Shown piece after piece: positions 51,847-64,000 of a stretch of 64,000 nt of DNA. A program made the translations under genes and the position numbers. Below the pieces are notes generated by a model, which was not told the origin of the DNA, did no database searches, and saw only the letters and a list, made by a program, of their open reading frames with translations. Source of the stretch: Pavona decussata (lineage: Eukaryota); NCBI GenBank assembly GCA_977016875.1, contig CDRNST010000273.1, positions 3,038,001 through 3,102,000 of the forward strand, given 5' to 3'. Position 1 is the first letter of the stretch. Every line of letters begins with the position of its first letter.

Positions 51847-53574
51847 TTAATAAATTATTATTGCTTATGTGCCTCTTCATACGAAAGGAAATACTAATAA
51901 GGTATTATTATCATTAAGGTTAAAATTATACTTTCAGTATACTTAAGTTAAGACAAACGTTATGAGCTTTCTCGAAGTATACCCAAGTATACTTCGATTT
52001 TTGAAGTATAAATGTAGTACATTAGTCAAATATACTTCATTTATATTTTTTATCTTCAAGTATAAATGAAGTATACTTCAAATAGGCCAACATTATGACA
52101 TATGCATAATGTGATTTTATCTCGAGGCCCGTCATAGTTAAGTATTTAGGTGTGACGTTGCACAGGGCACGGAGCGTTGTCAATCATAGAACTTAGCCAA
52201 TCAAATGAGGTCAGATCTAATAACACCAAGGTAATAGGCAAGATCAGTATATCTCGTGGTCCTTCATGCCTTCATTCCCATTGTGTTAACATCTGAACAC
52301 AGATTTCCGGTACTGTAGAAGAATTAATTTTTGAGGCAAGTTTAACATTTTTCTTTTTCTTCGTTTTTCTTTTCTACTTTTGGTTCTTTCTTACCGTTTG
52401 ACCTCAGTTGCGAAGGTTTTTCGGACAATAGTTGGGACATGACTAACTCCACCCCCCCCCCCCTCCCGTGCATTGATTCTAGGGCATTCCTTTATTAAGC
52501 GATTAAAGCAGTTAGTCCAGAATAATTCCAATGACTTTGATCTTGACTTCCAAATGTCCTTGCCTGTGCTAACACGTTGGTATGGAGTTGAGGGTGGAAC
52601 CGAAAAGACATTAAAGTTTGACACACATTTCCTTCATCCCTTTCGCCCTGATATCGTCATTCTCCAACTAAGCAGTAATGACCTCATTACTCTTTCGCCA
52701 TTACATGTTGGTTCAGCCCTTGATGAGTTTGTCCATTTCCTACACGAACCATGCGGGGTGAAGTTGGTGTGCGTGTGCCAGACTATTCGCCGATTCTCAG
52801 CTGAGGCTTTTAACACAAAGGTCAGCATGTTGACACGATACCTAAGGGTTGTGTTAGATCCTACACTATATGCCATTTTTGGGGGCCATAGAGGGTTTTG
52901 GCAGGCGAAAGACATTTTTTATACACCTGATCCGGGTGATCTGGTGATGTAACTCGGGGGACTGGAGAGAGAAATTTTAATGCCGTATCCCACAACTGCG
53001 TGCGGCCTTCAGTGTTGCTTTCGAATTTTAACATGGCGGCCTGTAGCCTTGTGAGGTCGGTCTCATTTGAACGTTAACTCACCTGGCACGATACACATGA
53101 CATGTAGAATGCATGAAGAATAATCCTTTATGTTTAACTAATGCAATTACTGAAGGAAATTGGGAGGTAAAGCCATGAAAGCTTCGAGTCATTGGAGAAT
53201 GACATCTGATGCGATAAGTGATTGAGGACGGATTGAACTGTAAGCATGAATCAGAAAGATTTATTTGAATAATTTGGTTTCCAATACTACCTTAAACTGT
53301 GTTAATTTACTTTTGTGTCACTATCAAAGTTGATATTTGCTAAAGAATGTCTTGATCGATTCTGGTATCTGTTAAATGTTCTTATAAATAGCTTGCCATG
53401 TTCGAATTCTGAACTCGATGAAGACGCGGGTGTCACAGTTTTGGCGAGCTTTTGAGACGCCGGCCGGTCGGCAGTGTTGCCGTGACTCAGGACTTTAAAT
53501 TTATGTTGCTTGTTGGTTTGTTTGTCTTTTTTATGTTTTTTTTTTTTTTTTTTTGGCAATTCAACCCCGGTCAG

Positions 53575-56390
53575 GTCGTTTTGTTTTGTACTCTGGCATT
53601 TAAATGTCTTTTCGAGCGAAGGAAAACTATTGCAATTCGGAGTCGGCCCTAGTACGCTTGCACTGCCCTCATAAAAGCTGCGACAAGTTTTACATGAACA
53701 AGAAAAATTTAAATGAACACTTCCACTTGAATCCATCGCATAGACCAGACTCTTTGGTGACGACTCGAGTTTGTATTACTGCTAAGGAATGTGCAGAAAA
53801 ATTCCTTGACGATGAAAAAAACCCATACTCTAGGAACGTTTGTGTGTAAACTTCTTACGGATGAAGAACTTCAACTGTATGCACTGCCAAGGATTGCCAA
53901 AATTGTGACACCCGTGGACTATTTATTACAAGAAACTACAGGTACACTTAACGATGTACACAAAAAGCTGGTCAAGTTTAAAAATGACTTTAAAAATGAC
54001 TTTAACTCTCTCTTTTGTCAAGGATCACCGGCTGAAACAAGCCCAAGAGAAAAACTGGCGGAAATAGTGCAAAGTAATCTACCTCATTCGTGTGATTGGA
54101 TTATTGAATTGGGCAATGGTACTTTGTTTAAAGATGCTATCATGCCTAAAGTGTTCCAAAGAGAGTATCATGCTTTTGAAGAATTTTCTTGTGGTATGGC
54201 TGGGGCTTTTGGAATTGGGCAAAAAGATGTGCAAGACACCCTCAGGAACAAATGGGGCAAAAAAAAAACTGGAAACAGTGATTGGAATAAATCCAATTTT
54301 GAGCAAATATAAAATTTTTGGCAAACTCAATGACCACACGCAAGAGCTTTTGGATGGACTATATTAATGGACTACACTGATGGGTTCCCGTGGCTCAAAT
54401 GGTCTCGCCACTTCACAGGGGAGACAAGTGTCAGAGTTAAACTTGTTGAGCCATACAATTTAATGAGCACAGTCTTAACAGTTGCCCTTTGGCTAGGTAA
54501 TGATGACTATGACACTGTAAGAAAGTGTGCTGAACCAGTTTTTGAAAAACTGAAAGATCTCAAGTCAATAAAACATCCCATCAGTGGAAAAGACATTACA
54601 ATCGTAAGGCGCAGCTGTGGGGATGGGAAGGAGAGAAGATCATCAACTGGTAATTCATCTGCCAAGTCCTCCTATCCCATCCCTGAATCCCCAGAACATC
54701 AGAGCCAGCTTGGAGACATGAAATTTGTATGCCCACAACCAGTGTGGACAGTTGTAGAAACTGAGGTGCTGGAAGAACAATTCCATGAGACACTTAATGG
54801 AAAGGCTCCAACTAAGCAAAAGCGAAGAGAATTCGCAAAACAAAACCTGGGTAACATGGGAAGAAAAATATATGTGGAACACCCCTTGCTGATTTCTACC
54901 CAGGTACAGCCCACCTTGGGTTTCGATCAGTAGAAACCTTGTGTTTAAGGATAGCTAGAATTGCATCAGGTTTGTATCTTATCCTATTTTGAATTAACAC
55001 TAGAATGTGACAATTCACAAGACATAATGCACATTAGCCCTATCAATTTTAAAGAAAAGTAGAGAAAGTTAAATGTAGACCATTTGTTGAACCCCCTCCC
55101 CCCTAATCACTGAAGAATTTGACCATCAAAGGTAGGACACCAGAGTGTGGATCAAGTGTTTACATGTACTTGAAATGGAAGTAGTTAAGGACAGAATGAA
55201 GAAATTATTTTGAGCTCATCTCACCACTTTCTTTTATTTTTCTGTGCCCCTGAAAAAGGATTTTTATCAAATACTCTTCAATATAAGAAAAATTTACTGT
55301 ACTAGATTTGACCCCACCCTCCAGCCTCCACTTCCTCAGCTCAGGCACAACACTGATGGGTATATGATGGTACACTCTTTGATTGAAAAAGAGGATAAAC
55401 AGCAAACATAAAAAATTTGTTGATCGCAAAGCAATGAAAACCACCTTAACACCTCATCTAGGCTGCAGATGAGAAATGGTTGTCGTGAGGGTATGCACTC
55501 ATCAAGACAAGCATTTCCAGTAAAAAAAAAATTGCAAAAGGGTGTACCAAAACAAACACTCCACTTACAATAAGCTTAATGGTGGTAATCATTTTCATTT
55601 GCCACAAAATATGCAAGTGTACAGGCAAATCAAACGAAATCCTTAAAATTTTTTGGTAGCTAAACCATGCATTACAAATTATTAGATAATTAGTACAATT
55701 CAAATATTACAGCTGTTTTGGGGAGTGACCAGTCATTCTTGCATGCACTTAAGAAAGGCTTTGCCAAGTCAGTAAACATAGAAGAAAGAACTATCAAGTT
55801 TGACGAAGTTGGTGTGCTTGCATTTCCTGAAAGAATGCCCGCCATTTTAAGCCAAGCAGGGTTTCAAGGAACTTTACTTGACATTCTCACCACATTCTGC
55901 AGTGGGCTTGACAAAGTGTTTAAAGGTCTCCTTCAAACATCCCAGGAGTTAACTGGTGATAAGTATGGAGCTCATGCTCGTGTTCTCCTTGGTTTTCAAG
56001 CAGTTCAAATCTTTGGAAGTAACTGCATTATGAAAACAAATGCATTATGAAAACAAATTGTGACATATGTTCCGTACTATATTGACAAGGCCATTGCTGA
56101 TGGAAAGATGGTTGGTCTTCCCATTACTTTGGCAAACTTCAGTGATGCCACCATGGAAACAGCACATAAACACAACAAAAGGAAATCCTTGCTTTTTTCT
56201 TGGGGAAGAGCCAGCCCAATATCAAGATGTCAGTACCAAGACCAGGTGATCGAGCAGCAGTTTCAAAATGAAGTCTTCAAAATAACCAACCGAGAGAGCA
56301 CGCCACAAAAATCGTCTTGAAGGAAACCTGAAAAAAGCGGAAAGCAATTGTTGAGAAAGAAAGCGGAGTTAAACGAGTGGTAATTAAAGC
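53575..56390 (+). pseudogene. RAG1/Transib-fold DDE transposase with N-terminal C2H2 finger (spliced, frameshifted)
   Basis: CPHKSC..HFHLNPSH finger. DYTDG (RAG1 D600-like), VALWLGNDDYDTV, CGDGK (D708-like), PGTAHLG (DALH-like), NFSDATMETAHK (E962-like). Intron ~54970-55712. Confidence 0.75.
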
Positions 56391-57139
56391 TATATAATTA
56401 TTTATGAATTATATAATGCAAATTATATAAACAGCTACCTTTTGCAGGTAGCTGAAATTACTTAAAGTCTTGGAATTTTAGTGTGTATATAGGAAATTAA
56501 ATGACAACAAGCTGGAACAATTTTTTTATGGTTAGCAAAAATGTGAAGGGAAGGAAGAAACCAGTCAAAATATGGTTGTGATAATCAAGCAAATATTTTT
56601 CAATGCCAAAATCTAATAATGGGAACTCTTGAATATAACTTAACAAAGTTTGTAAGTACATCGATGCCTAATCAACAAGAATTTATAGCTTCCAAGGTTG
56701 GTAACTCAGATCTATTTTAAATTCAATTGTATTGGTTTTAATCCTGTAAAGCACTTGTTCTTTGCTGACCACAAACTGGAAGACAGCATGCAAATGCCAA
56801 ACACAAGCAAAACTCCTTCTGATGATCAAAAAAGCAGAGAAGATGATGGAGCAAGTGATGATGAAAATGACTTGGTAAGCAAAATTTAAACTGAATCCAG
56901 TATTAAGTAATAAAATATGTGTATAAAAATGGACAAAGTTTTGGTTTTATAGGCACTTGGGCTTAATTCTGCTTTAAAAAGGCTAGATCTAAATTAATTG
57001 GTTTAAATTGACAATGAAATATGCTGTAATTATAATTTGTTACCGTTCAATCCAGGAAGGGCAAAAACTATGACCTCGGGTAAAAAATTCGAAAAATCAT
57101 GAGTCAGTCAGTTAAGTTAAAACCACTTACTGCTTTCAG

Positions 57140-58042
57140 GAAGAGGCGACTGCAGAAGACTGTCTTGGGCAGGCTCACGTCCCAGCAGTTCAGATTGTTC
57201 CTCAAGGATCAGAAGCAGATGTCCACTTATTAGCTGACGACCTTTTCAAGTTTGCACAGGATAACTTCCACAACACCGTGATTACGCAAGTGACTCAAGA
57301 ATCTGCTTCAAAGTTTAGAGAAAATAGCTTTCCACCCTCAAATCTCAGTTTTCATTTGCAGTCTCTTGAAACAAATTTCGTTTCCTGGAAACGTACGGAT
57401 GCGAGAGTCAGCAAAGAAGTGTTCAAATGTAAAATCTTACCAGGTGCTGTAAGCCGTTGTTTTAGCATTCAATCGACAAAAAGTGAAGCAAGTCAAAGCA
57501 ATAGAATGATCATACCATTTTCTGATATTCTTGGATTGGATGTCAAAGAGGACTCGATCGTAATGGATGTTGGTGTACTACCGAAGATGGAGCAAAGGGT
57601 CTCATCGAGCAAAACAGTCGACGAGTCTTGTCATACATCGAAGGGCAAGTGGAAGGAGGAAACTGTCAGTGATCAAGCTAATTGTGAACCACCTTACCAA
57701 ATATGTGTTAAAAAACAGCGTTTCAACGACCCAAGCACCATTCAGCTGAACAAAATCTTCGCAGAAATTTCATCTTTGAAGCTAGCAACCGAAAATGGCC
57801 TTCAAGATTCTTATCCAAGAACACCGCCTTGTGCGGAGACCAATCCTGAAGAAAAATATCCCATTGTTAAAGATTCAACACTTGTTAGAGCCGGGCAGCT
57901 GGCCTGTTTACGTCTTTTCCAGTGCCTTCCATCACAGGATCAAACAGAATTCGTAATAACGATGTATTCATCGATGGAAGAGCGATTCAATAGCCTTTTA
58001 AGGAAAAGGATTGGATTAACTGTTCAGCCACCTTGCCAATGA
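57140..58042 (+). CDS. Unknown 254+ aa ORF inside the TIR element (last exon of the transposase or a second gene)
   Basis: Open frame 57278..58042 preceded by a TTTCAG acceptor near 57139 and a small acidic exon at ~56780-56873. MIIPFSDILGLDV is reminiscent of PH-like folds. Confidence 0.5.
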   Translation, partial: EEATAEDCLGQAHVPAVQIVPQGSEADVHLLADDLFKFAQDNFHNTVITQVTQESASKFRENSFPPSNLSFHLQSLETNFVSWKRTDARVSKEVFKCKILPGAVSRCFSIQSTKSEASQSNRMIIPFSDILGLDVKEDSIVMDVGVLPKMEQRVSSSKTVDESCHTSKGKWKEETVSDQANCEPPYQICVKKQRFNDPSTIQLNKIFAEISSLKLATENGLQDSYPRTPPCAETNPEEKYPIVKDSTLVRAGQLACLRLFQCLPSQDQTEFVITMYSSMEERFNSLLRKRIGLTVQPPCQ

Positions 58043-58942
58043 ACTGCGTTACACTCAATTTTTTAAAATCTTCAGCTCCATTACTTAAGCAAAGCGGATT
58101 ATTCCTCAATCCTTCTACATATCCTGTGTATCGTGCGACAGCGAGTTGAGTAGACTTTCAAATGAAACTGAGTGAAACTGACCGCGTTACTCCGCCATTT
58201 TAAAATTCGAAAGGAACACTTAAGGCCGCGCAGTTGTGGGATACGGCATTAAAATTTCTCTCCCCAGTCCCCCGAGTTACGTCACCAGATCACCTGGATG
58301 GCATTCATTTGAACTCTAGGATCCAGCATAAGCTATATCGTAGTCTCAGAGGGGCAGTCCTGCGATCTTTGCGCCTTTTGCCAAGTTCTCCCTCCTCGGA
58401 AAGAGTTTGTCAAGTTTGCTTTATTCTGATACAGATCTTTACATGTTTTGCCAGCTCTTAGTTGTGCCCTATGCCGAGTCTGATGTTTTACTGCTACGTT
58501 TACCTATTATTTGTGTCAGCCTTATATATTTGCTGTAAGCCACTGCCCCTTTTTGGGCACGGCTACGTTTGATTCAGCTACACAGGTGTTTGATTGAACG
58601 ACTCTTTATACAGTCGTTACTACACATAGCACATATGTACTCCTTTCTGGCTGCACACGTATAATTATTTTACTGGCTCCGGCTCAATGTTAGGTACTGG
58701 CAGTTACCGCATGAGTGTACAATCCTTTCTGACCGCTCAGTTTTTGGCTGTGTCCTTTGAGCTCGGTATTCTGCCTTTGCTTAAGGCACTATAGTACTTC
58801 TGGCGCTAAATAACCCGGTTATTTTTTTAGTTCATTTCCGTCACTATGAAGAGCATTATTTCCAGTGCTGTCCCCATGCAGATCACGTTAATTTTTGTTA
58901 CCGTAATCTAGTTTCTGATCAAAGAAATTTTATTGATAAGCC

Positions 58943-59710: not shown

Positions 59711-59956
59711 CACGGCGCTTTCAGAGCATCAGATCCGGACATTAGCTTGGGGAACCGCAAAATCTCGACAACTTATTAAATTTCAAGTTAATACTTCACT
59801 GGCGGTGTTTGCGTGCCTTGGCCTATTCCCCTGTACTCTATAAATAAGCTGTGTGGTTCTTAGTGTTGAAAGAAATGTATGCGCAATGAGCATTTTTAGA
59901 ATATTCAGGTAACAGAGTAGTCACGTAGCTGTAAAGGCGGCTGTCAAATGTAAAGC

Positions 59957-60422
59957 GCTAGTTTATTTTTGACCTTTACGTCTCCTTCACGGGAGTTATG
60001 GCGGGCGTCGCATGTTACGAAATAAAGGAAGTTTCTTTCACGATTTCGTGTCTTTGGAAGTTTTCCTTTTGCAGTCATTACTATTTATGATTAGTTAAAC
60101 CTTTAATAAAGTAATTTAGCTAACGCTGTATCAGAGAGATTTTCACTGAACACCGGAATTATAGTGCTTTTAATATTTTGGTATTCCTTGCTAGTTTATT
60201 TTTGACCTTTACGTCTCCTTCACGGGAGATATGGCAGGCGTCGCATGTTACGAAATAAAGGAAGTATCTTTCACAATTTTGCGTCTTTGGAAATTTTCCT
60301 TTCGTAGTAATTACTATTTATGATTAGTTAAACCTTTAATAAAGTGATTTAGCTAACGTTGTTTCAGAGAGATTTTCGCTGAACACCGTGATTAGTGCTT
60401 TTAATATTTTGGTATTCTTCGC
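59957..60422 (+). repeat. 233-bp tandem duplication in the 5' non-coding region of the Chapaev/RAG1-like element
   Basis: GCTAGTTTATTTTTGACCTTTACGTCTCCTTCACGGGAG starts at 59957 and 60190. The copies are slightly diverged. Confidence 0.92.
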
Positions 60423-60432
60423 TGTCGCAGCC

Positions 60433-63400
60433 ATGTCAGACGAACATACTAAGCACTTAATGGAATTCTGTCGTATCTGCGGGGAAAAACTAAGTAAATG
60501 TAAAAGTTCCAAAGCTGAAACCAGCTATCTTTGTTCCTCGAATGTCCAATTTATGCAAGATAATTTTGGCATAACCGTGGAAAAGGACATCAGCGATGTT
60601 CATCCTCCTCGTTTTTGCAAGAAGTGCCATCTCTCGCTTTCTCACGGCCTCGTGTTTTGGGAACCACATCAAGAGGAAGAATGCAAAACTTGCAATCTTG
60701 CAACTGTGGTAAAAAAGGGAGGGAGACCGTCAAAACTTGACTTCTGCAAATTGGTGGAAAATGTGCCTTTGAATCGAGTGGAAGCTTTCGGGGAAAAGTT
60801 TAACTTTGCCGGAGAGGTTCCAAGAGAATACTTCTGACCGGTTTGTTTGGATATTTTAGACCAACCTGTAGAAACTGACAGCCAGCATTACTTTTGCTCT
60901 GACTGCATCACGAGGGTGGTAACAACCTCTTCTTGTTTGACCTGCCCCTTATGTAAAGTGGACTCGTTAAGTTCCATAAGAGTTCTCACTCGTATGGTGC
61001 TAAATTTTATAAAATATCTCCCGGTAACTTGCAAGACATGTGGCAAAAACGCGAGATATGAGGACTGTGGTGATCATGAATGCGCAACTGATAACCCCAA
61101 ACCCAGAGCACCTACAGCAGGTGTTGTACAGGCTGAACCTGTCCCCGAGATTCTTCCCGCGAAAACTGTACAGGGAAACGCACTCCCGAGGCAGAACCAC
61201 TTGGAACTTTGTTTGTGAAAGCAAAGTTAGGGTCTTCCACTGACTTGAAAACTGTAACTGTGAAAACTGGTGGAAAGGTAAGACTATGCATGAAAACTCT
61301 TCACAATCAATAGTAGTGTTTTCCCTAGACTCAAAATCTTGTACAAGTCCTCAGACGTGTTTATTTATTCTTTATAGTCATTTGACTTGAAACATATGCC
61401 TCGTGCTCACAAGAAATCCTCAGATGTAACAGGGCGTCACCTTCTTAGAAGAACCAGACACCTTGAGAATGTTGGTGCGTCCATAAGCCAAGGCCAGATG
61501 GATGTCCATGTCATGCACAGCTTGGGACTAAAAGAAAAGCGGGATCGTGAGGCTATCCTCCGTGAAGCACTGGGGAAAGAGCTGGTTCTTGAGCTTCCCG
61601 AGGGCCAGACTCTAGCTATGAAGGTAGACTTAAGTATGTCATGGCATGGACTAAATAAACTCCGTCGGTAAGTCGGTGTCGGTTTAACCCAACAATGCCG
61701 AATTTACAATTCACGTTATGTATATTATCTTTTGCATCTATGTTTAGATGATTCAAACAATGGGGTATCAAGATGGACAGTGAAAAACAAAACAGCGAGT
61801 ACAGAAGTCTACTCAACTACAGGAGGAGGACCTTCAAGAGGAGATGCTACCATTGGAACAAGAGGAGGGGCAACAAAGTGGTAACTCTGATAAAACCAAC
61901 ACCTACAGCCTATGTGGTGGACCTGAAAGGCAAAGTGGTCTCCTACATCGACAAATGTGACAAGTGAGAACTGACAAACTCGTGGATTTTTCTTTCAGTA
62001 TCTTGTTTTGCTTTAGTTGGATATTTCATTTTTCTCTTTTTTGTTTTGGTTTGTTTCCTTTGATAGAGCTAAGATCCTGACGTGGCATGCAGGTTGCATA
62101 CCACACAACATGGTGTACGTAAAACTTGGTGGAGATCATGGGCAGGGCTCTATGAAAATGGAGTTCCAAATTGCCAATGTTCCTAAACCAAACTCGCCCC
62201 AGAACACAGTTGTGTTTTCAATTTTTGAGGGTAAAGATAGATGTACAAGGAGCGATCTTGCTACCATCCTCCAAGGGTGCAGGGAACAAATTAAAGATCT
62301 TCACAGTTCAACCTGGAGGTAGGTTATTTCTTTTTGTATGGGACAAATAATGTTTGATTTTTATTACATTTTTCTATGTCAGCATGTTATTGTTTGGTGT
62401 CATTCCTGCAGGGAGAAGGCATTTGTCTGTTTTCTTTATGGTGACTACAAGTTTCTATGTAAAGTCATGGGAATTTCCGGAGCATCAGGTAAGTGCTTCA
62501 ACATTAGCTATAAATAGAACATCACAGGGACATTTGATAAAGCATATAACACTTAAAACTAAATGTTGGTCACATGCTTTGTTCCTGGTCGACATCCTTG
62601 CCTTTGGTGCACCATACTGGCCAGTGAGATGCTATTGGATAAGGATAAGAGATCACCTAATTTCCTGCGTTCCCTTGAGCATCTAACCCAACAATTTGCA
62701 GAGTTCCAGGAAAGGGGGCAGGGTGACATTAAAAAAGCTAAAAACTTTTTCAATATTATTCAGAGTCCCATGTTGGACATCCAGTTTGACCAGGTACTGA
62801 CAATGAATAATTTCATCAAAACAATGTTGTAACACTAGCTAATCTCCATACAACACTGGCAAGATGGACAACAAATCTTATTTTCTGTTATCATTTTATT
62901 TTTCAGATTTGCACACCAGGACTTAACATAAGCCTGGGCTTATTCCTCAAGTTCTATGAACTTCTTGATGACTGTGCTAAGCTTGCCGAGAAGATCACCT
63001 TCAAAATGACAGAGGACACCTCAGCACTTGGGGATTCCGAGCTAGAAACACTGGTTAAGAACCTCCATCAAGTAAGGCAACACAAGGCTGCAGCAGCAGT
63101 TTATCTTGAAGAAGCTCAGCAGGCTGAGGAATATGCCTGCTATGTGGCCAACTGGGGGGTGCAAGCTGACCAGCCCGACTGCAATCCTGTTGTACAGCAA
63201 CTGCTTCAACATGCACATACACTAAAGCAGAAAGCTCATCAAGAAGTAAGCTAACCATGAGTACCGTTTACTGTTATATACCCTGGATCACACTCCCATA
63301 CACTCACTTGCCTATGACCTAGCAAAAGCATATACTGACAATATTCAAAGTTATTCAACACTTTCTGTTTGTACAGTCGACTCCCGATAACTCGAACCTT

Positions 63401-64000
63401 CAAGGGAAATTGAAAAAGGCTTGAGTTATCGGCAGTTCGAGTTGTCGAGGGTAAAATTATATAGGAAAATGACCTAAAGGGAAAGGAAAATTATCTCGAG
63501 TTAGCACGAGGTTTGGGTTAGCGACAGTTCAAGTTATCGGGAGTCGACTGTACTGTAGAAAAAAGGTGCCTAACAGCTCAAGGCTGAAAACAAGTTCTTG
63601 CGACAAATTGGGAAAATACATCAAGCACTGGAGGATTTCCTTCAAACAATTAATGTCAAGCGCCAAGCATATCATAGGCATAGTTTAGTTGGCAATCATA
63701 TTAGCATATGGCTTCAGGTATTGTAGTGTTTGTAGATGACTTCAATAATACAAAGCTGTTTTAACTTCACATACATGTCATAAAAACGACTTGAATGACA
63801 AAAAATTGGGCACTATTGAGTGGTTGATTAAAGAACAACTGTATAAATGTTTTGTTCATTCTTTTAACCAGAGAACAACACGAGAATGAGTGGAACAATA
63901 CCAAATGTCACCAACGAGTTCTGTCCATCTTTGGCCAGTGAGGCAGTCAAAGTTCAAGACAAGTTCCAAACACTGTTGACATAGTTTTCCACCTGCCATT
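60433..64000 (+). pseudogene. RAG1-like/Chapaev transposase: Chapa (RAG1 N-terminal-like) domain + RING + zinc finger + DDE core, at least 9 exons, inactivated
   Basis: HTKHLMEFCRICG..DVHPPRFCKKC..WEPH..CKTC. RING *PVC..QHYFCSDC..CPLC. CKTC..HEC. LAMKVDLSMSW, VKLGGDHGQGSMK, PNSPQNT, FLYGDYKFLCKVMGISGASGRHPCLWC, PGLNISLG, QAYH..SLVGNH. GT donors at 61278, 61668, ~61964, 62319, 62489, 62794, 63247 and 63718. Confidence 0.88.
63374..63550. mobile_element. 177-bp Tc1/mariner-pogo type MITE in an intron
   Basis: TA|CAGTCGACTCCCGATAACTCGAAC ... GTTCAAGTTATCGGGAGTCGACTG|TA. Confidence 0.92.

Follow-up and report, generated by a model that had tools for sequence, protein, structure and literature searches.

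A decayed DDE transposon of Pavona decussata as a candidate for an unnamed lineage with a RAG1-type transposase fold

The locus considered here raises the question of where a transposon belongs whose transposase recalls RAG1 and Transib, and whose ends and target-site duplication (TSD) are of a different kind. The element occupies positions 52932-58297 (5,366 bp) of a stretch of 64,000 nucleotides from Pavona decussata (assembly GCA_977016875.1, contig CDRNST010000273.1, positions 3,038,001 to 3,102,000 of the forward strand; C273:3038001-3102000 in the present numbering), which is referred to as the window, and it carries terminal inverted repeats (TIRs) of about 108 nt, both beginning CC(G/A)GGTGATC. 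An earlier note, made from the letters of the window, had described it as a complete transposon with a RAG1/Transib-like transposase, ends other than CAC and a 2-bp TSD. As argued below, the element is very likely a decayed, formerly autonomous cut-and-paste transposon with a spliced DDE transposase gene, representing a distinct lineage of the CACTA/Mirage/Chapaev/Transib (CMCT) clade; jointly with this, and at the same strength, the transposase is assigned an architecture of the RAG1/Transib type, with an N-terminal DNA-binding region, a catalytic domain like RNase H and a C-terminal domain. A fuller proposal, held with somewhat less than even confidence, is that the lineage is an unnamed one with the RAG1 fold, mostly cnidarian so far, which dispenses with the zinc module, has CCNGNTGAT rather than CA or CAC ends, cuts its target with a 2-bp stagger and possesses an extra C-terminal domain that may be PH-like.

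The boundaries of the element can be fixed to the nucleotide. Its left end reads CCGGGTGATC and its right end, reverse-complemented, CCAGGTGATC, with AT flanking both; nine paralogues of the surrounding host repeat that represent the empty site read ...ACACCCG-AT-GGCGTTCATTT with one AT only, so that both the boundaries and the 2-bp TSD (52930..52931 on the left and 58298..58299 on the right, unstranded) are exact and the host TPDGIHLN frame, from which the AT duplication had originally been deduced, is restored. The 5' TIR (52932..53039, + strand) begins CCGGGTGATCTGGTGA and the 3' TIR (58192..58297, - strand) ends ...TCACCAGATCACCTGG; they were delimited by an inverted-repeat search (pairs I1, I3, I5 and I2) and by the end sequences. 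One pair of arms, 52930-53000 / 58229-58299, spans 71 nt at 96% complementarity and the pair that continues it, 53002-53039 / 58192-58229, spans 38 nt at 92%, in keeping with the repeats of about 110 bp reported before, and weaker inverted similarity continues beyond the 108 nt as far as ~53143 / 58079 (~210 nt). The repeat that served as the insertion target lies at 52473-52931 and 58298-~58460, contains an open reading frame (ORF) resembling a GDSL/SGNH hydrolase and occurs in at least 10 genomic copies at 91-94% identity.

Are these ends and this duplication peculiar to one copy? A search of the genome (602 Mb in 1,180 contigs) returned at least 40 matches to the TIR and its terminus, among them one further full-length copy (contig C49, 93-95% identical to the window element) and about 13 short non-autonomous derivatives in two size classes (~0.75 kb and ~1.2 kb) that have kept only the ends. 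Other complete elements numbered 13, and 11 of them are bordered by a 2-bp TSD (GA, AA, AG, CT, CA, TT, AA, CT, CT, AT and TG); one of the remaining two has a 3-bp TSD (ACT) and the other a degenerate end and no TSD. A sister family at about 50% amino-acid identity, which begins CCTGCTGAT, also makes 2-bp TSDs (TT and CA in two copies) and has ends of the form CCTGCTG...CAGCAGG, with a TIR of 14 bp (CCTGCTGATTTCTA). Its three copies (loci L076-L078, at C248:604000-613999, C213:1238000-1247999 and C339:1830500-1840499) are 98.4-99.3% identical over 4.96 kb and, on sequence grounds, look recently mobile; in the copy on C248 the open frames measure 488, 246 and 304 aa. Across the copies and the sister family the duplicated dinucleotides are varied (nine different ones, ten when the sister family is included) and none is TA, and the 2-bp TSD shows no target sequence preference. 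The end motif CCNGNTGAT is common to the two families, and CC stands at the ends throughout. Since 2-bp TSDs and CCNGNTGAT ends are found in both families, they are properties of the lineage rather than features of a single copy, and the earlier claims of non-CAC ends and of a short duplication, the latter to be checked by tabulating many insertions, have both been borne out. Around the locus of a distant homologue, P0017 (L044), no TIRs were found and the end motif is not enriched.

The C49 copy, the sister family and database homologues without interruptions served as references in modelling the transposase gene, whose exons were searched one by one; all parts of the gene lie on the + strand. 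Exon 1 (53604..54968), placed by its ORFs, motif coordinates and alignments A1 and A2, is followed by a GT donor after 54968, and encodes an N-terminal C2H2 zinc finger (53661-53741), then a helical pre-catalytic region and the first half of the catalytic core. A predicted GT...AG intron of phase 1 (54969..55712) separates it from exon 2 (55713..56378, placed by ORFs and alignments), which holds the C-terminal half of the core; the frames on either side are contiguous with the uninterrupted homologues P0016, P0014 and P0017, and the splice signals are present in the sequence. A terminal exon of about 300 aa (57141..58042), recognised by its identity to the sister copies, alignment A3 and database homologues, lacks its own start codon and is preceded by a ttt-cag acceptor. 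The motifs quoted in the earlier note all occur here, namely DYTDG at 54370, SCGDGKERR at 54613, GTAH at 54903 and NFSDATMETAHK at 56135. Its description of the transposon as complete, however, holds for the two intact ends and fails for the coding region: exon 1 is split over three frames in the ORF list, 10 bp at 54354-54365 replace about 134 bp found in other copies, 1 bp has been lost near 54863, and a small duplication near 56030-56060 breaks exon 2.

Parts of the element are also present in public runs labelled 'coral metagenome'. Contigs of two host runs join 56326 to 57131, with 804 bp gone and one extra G, at a joint that is not GT-AG, and they are covered about five times as deeply as the 5' half of the element; this joint looks like an internally deleted class of DNA copies rather than splicing.

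What kind of enzyme this gene encoded was approached through structure, using P0016 (659 aa), a natural uninterrupted homologue modelled with AlphaFold from a 37-sequence alignment (predicted local distance difference test, pLDDT, 74; predicted template modelling score, pTM, 0.57). Among the PDB structures compared by Foldseek, all 49 matches with E <=0.001 were RAG1, BbRAGL or HzTransib (2.6e-10 to 3.6e-4), and the next match was Hermes with an E of 0.07. VIA-align likewise placed RAG1 first (Z 12.8, with 403 residues aligned between 110-617 of the model and 460-1006 of RAG1), followed by HzTransib (Z 11.7), the next fold reaching Z 5.0 and Hermes and the P element about 5; the structure search suggested earlier as a check has therefore returned the expected proteins as the only convincing ones. 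The element ISL2EU also makes a 2-bp TSD, by means of an IS5/PIF-like transposase, and no transposase of the IS5/PIF type was among the significant fold matches of Foldseek or VIA-align.

How far this match can be taken depends on what there was to compare. RAG1, BbRAGL and HzTransib are the only clade members among the solved structures returned, so that the PDB result cannot discriminate within the clade. A structural search of the ESM Atlas gave template modelling (TM) scores of 0.45-0.46 for the Transposase_21 clusters, 0.40 for DUF1280 and 0.38 for RAG1 among the named clusters, and of 0.45-0.48 for unnamed cnidarian and basidiomycete clusters; comparison by ESM features scored the unnamed cnidarian clusters at 0.95 and the RAG1 and DUF1280 clusters at 0.94. 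Because the predicted CACTA and Chapaev models match as well as RAG1 does, the safe placement is the CMCT clade and not RAG1/Transib specifically: the RAG1-type fold of the earlier reading stands, and its restriction to a RAG1/Transib branch is not supported.

At the level of sequence the relationship is faint. At E up to 1, the 37 family members examined give no match to the Pfam models RAG1 (PF12940), DUF1258 or Transposase_21, and the sole Pfam signal of the clade is DUF1280, in five of the 37 members and below threshold (best 18.8 bits against a cut-off of 25; E ~1.4e-3 to 1.7e-3). Phmmer and profile searches of PDB sequences returned nothing relevant, neither RAG1 nor Transib. When 1.84 billion representatives were searched exhaustively with HMMER, 234 proteins were recovered at E <=0.001, mostly fragments, and the homologues in searches that carry names are only unnamed or 'hypothetical protein'. 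The Pfam matches at the N terminus, among the ORF pieces and the 37 members, are zf-C2H2 and DUF4764, the latter near or slightly over its cut-off and covering the finger together with the block that follows. The zinc finger and this following block are shared by several long proteins, P0143 (840 aa), P0107 and P0156 / P0220; P0143 shares a further pre-catalytic helical block, after which there is no catalytic core, and the P0220/P0156 entry, a protein of 2,712 aa from the coral Desmophyllum pertusum (KAJ7371936.1), is the sole named database relative. Judged from sequence, the DNA-binding half may have been domesticated in these long coral proteins.

The catalytic residues are nevertheless well conserved among the homologues, in P0016 numbering D222 (29/30), D303 (29/30), H400 (21/21) and E566 (14/16). 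In the window copy they correspond to the aspartate of DYTDG (54379-54381), that of SCGDGKERR (54622-54624), the histidine of the 'LH' motif in GTAH (54912-54914, by alignment) and the glutamate in NFSDATMETAHK (56156-56158). In the homologue model the first Asp ends strand beta-1 of the RNase H-like domain and the second stands directly after beta-4. The zinc ligands are a different matter. The named lineages of the clade are reported to share a C(2)C and an H(3-4)H motif, to end mostly in CA..TG and to make TSDs of 2-5 bp (PMC12730594). The family shares the DDE fold and a 2-bp TSD and lacks both zinc motifs: alignment A2 of its homologues contains no Cys pair or His pair conserved in the core, the C(2)C position reading S-x-Y-P-I-P/E-E (in the window copy the loop SSYPIPES...PEHQSQLGDM, 54667-54720) and the H(4)H position Y-x-G/P-x-Y-I-D-K-A (TYVPYYIDKA, 56063-56092, aligned with H(4)H of RAG1). 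Likewise, in place of the 5'-CA..TG-3' termini typical of the clade, both families have 5'-CC..GG-3'.

Comparison with the named systems sharpens the picture. With Transib, RAG1 and BbRAGL (ProtoRAG) the family shares the core architecture and the fold over some 400-460 residues (RAG1 460-1006), as well as the order D, D, E and similar local motifs, D-G, D-x-K/R-x-R-R...G...S-x-Y, the 'LH' His and E-x-x-H/N-K. Target duplications in Transib and RAG elements are 5 bp long and the termini resemble recombination signal sequences (PMC4411706), whereas the family has a 2-bp TSD, ends of CC(A/G)GG...CCTGG instead of CAC..GTG, no end organisation resembling heptamer and nonamer, none of the four zinc ligands, no RAG2-like partner, an N-terminal C2H2 finger and no detectable match at the sequence level. 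Chapaev and Chapaev3 are animal transposons of the same clade, to which the sub-threshold DUF1280 signal also points; they are described with TSDs of 3-4 bp (TWA in Chapaev3), invariable CAC..GTG ends and C(2)C, LH and H(4)H motifs (PMC4079192), and with an N-terminal Chapa domain that may or may not be accompanied by a RING finger (PMC4411706). The family, by contrast, has a 2-bp TSD (3 bp in only one of the 13 other copies), no CAC..GTG, only the LH histidine of the three motifs, and an N terminus made up of a single C2H2 finger and a helical region rather than a Chapa domain or RING. ESTA and CNEST, the recently described EnSpm-like lineages of fungi, belong to the same clade and have 2-bp TSDs; ESTA makes TA duplications and reportedly has the Cys and His motifs as well (PMC12730594), and CNEST combines TA TSDs with CACGG ends (PMC12810828). 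Compared by description only, they differ from the family in that their TSD is always TA, while that of the family varies, its ends are CC and the motifs are absent. With EnSpm/CACTA (Transposase_21) the likeness lies in the predicted models (TM 0.45-0.46 over ~390-400 residues) and in short TSDs of 2-3 bp, a CACTA element with a 2-bp TSD having been described (PMC6004678); unlike these, the family has neither CACTA ends, nor a Transposase_21 sequence match, nor the zinc motifs. A 2-bp TSD alone is thus not new in the clade; the combination of features is, and the family is probably a new lineage within a known clade, set apart by the Pfam models and by the published descriptions of the named groups.

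A Chapaev element adjoins the one under study. At 59711-64000 of the window, with ORFs at 60388-60837, 60847-61218 and 62017-62322, there are pieces of RAG1_imp_bd (Chapa-like), RING and DUF1280, the last scoring 40.5 bits; this is a genuine Chapaev-type transposase with the Chapa and RING architecture described for the group (PMC4411706); it is of a known kind and offers a useful contrast within the window.

Several observations weigh against the placement proposed here. The modelled P0016 is only 42-44% identical to the protein pieces of the window and is not the window protein itself; the comparison with RAG1 is a fold-level match without a residue-level structural alignment; and the catalytic Glu falls in a stretch of the model with a pLDDT <50, so that it was assigned from its conservation and collinear position rather than from geometry. 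The block-by-block alignment with the RAG1 core proposed in the earlier note is accordingly plausible and consistent with the fold result, with its Glu in a low-confidence loop. When the family alignment was compared with one Chapaev ORF of this genome by hhalign, the match was not significant (probability 0.3); Chapaev paralogues are too few in the genome to make up a profile. Finally, RNA contigs from two metatranscriptome runs cover the predicted intron and contain no GT-AG joints.

Among the alternative explanations, the most serious is that Repbase or Dfam already contains the family, for instance as a cnidarian entry under EnSpm/CACTA, Mirage or 'DNA unknown', in which case only its description would be new. 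This is a substantial possibility, put at about a third: 2-bp TSDs have been recorded from the clade (PMC12730594; PMC6004678), Mirage and Chapaev were subsumed under EnSpm in Repbase on the basis of weak similarity (PMC4455052), the repeat libraries of cnidarians are extensive, and cnidarian clusters of 'hypothetical protein' near the family protein already exist in the ESM Atlas. It is countered by the lack of any clade Pfam model over threshold and of any database homologue with a name beyond 'hypothetical protein', and by the literature examined, in which no lineage of the clade is described as having CC ends or as lacking C(2)C and H(3-4)H.

The two remaining explanations would each attach the family to one named group. 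That it is a specific sister of Transib and RAG1, with CACTA, Mirage and Chapaev more remote, draws on RAG1, BbRAGL and HzTransib being the sole convincing matches among solved structures and on the RAG1 clusters being among the nearest by ESM features; the former cannot discriminate, as no other clade members were among the solved structures returned, and Transposase_21 (TM 0.46) and DUF1280 (0.40) score at or above RAG1 (0.38). With the only Pfam signal, itself sub-threshold, being DUF1280, the Chapaev family according to Majorek et al. (PMC3985635), and with a TSD and ends unlike those of Transib, such a sister relationship is considered unlikely. Membership of Mirage is considered more improbable still. 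Within CMC, 2-bp TSDs are associated above all with Mirage, and it was this duplication, here in an animal genome, that first suggested the identification. The same work equates Mirage with DUF1258 (PMC3985635), which none of the 37 members matches at E up to 1, and on this ground the identification was rejected; moreover, the ends are not CA...TG, and the zinc motifs reported for Mirage (PMC12730594) are absent. A distinct lineage of the CMCT clade, not assigned to any of these groups, accordingly remains the preferred placement.

The terminal exon, which the fuller proposal counts as an extra domain, is conserved in its own right. Its frame is 27-28% identical to the equivalent frame 3' of the transposase in four sister copies, the ttY-cag acceptor before it is conserved in three families, and it has 36 database homologues, all unnamed, some of which are probably on the same contigs as transposase homologues. 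No Pfam match and no significant Foldseek match was found for it. Its model (pLDDT 60) comprises a beta-rich core and then helices; the best structural matches, all weak, are to PH-like domains, in RDR2 (Z 6.3) and in Pob3 and SSRP1 of FACT (Z 5.0-5.2), and ESM feature scores to PH-like families are similarly weak (0.85-0.86). On the strength of the model the core is possibly PH-like, and neither the structure nor the feature comparisons gave any sign of a RAG2-like propeller. The exon is most likely part of the transposase protein or an alternatively spliced partner, and a downstream exon or second product, if used, recalls TnpA/TnpD of EnSpm/CACTA.

By analogy with RAG1, Transib and hAT, a mechanism can be sketched for the active ancestors of this copy. 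The transposase would bind the TIRs through its C2H2 finger and the helical N-terminal region, nick at the CC ends and free the element by way of hairpins on the flanking DNA; the two 3'-OH ends would then be joined to the target strands at points staggered by 2 bp, and the gaps, once repaired, would become the 2-bp duplication.

Work on the origin of the V(D)J recombinase from a transposase takes RAG1, Transib and their CMC relatives as its model. The CA or CAC end and the zinc module that lies between the second Asp and the Glu are regarded as nearly constant throughout the clade; if the proposal made here is right, a lineage that retains the fold and the triad without either of them would show which portions of the RAG1 core an enzyme can do without in cutting and joining, and would illustrate how end recognition and target stagger (5, 3-4 or 2 bp) can shift. 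It would also provide an extra branch with which to root phylogenies of RAG and Transib, and would add to coral genomes a transposon family that current protein models have missed.

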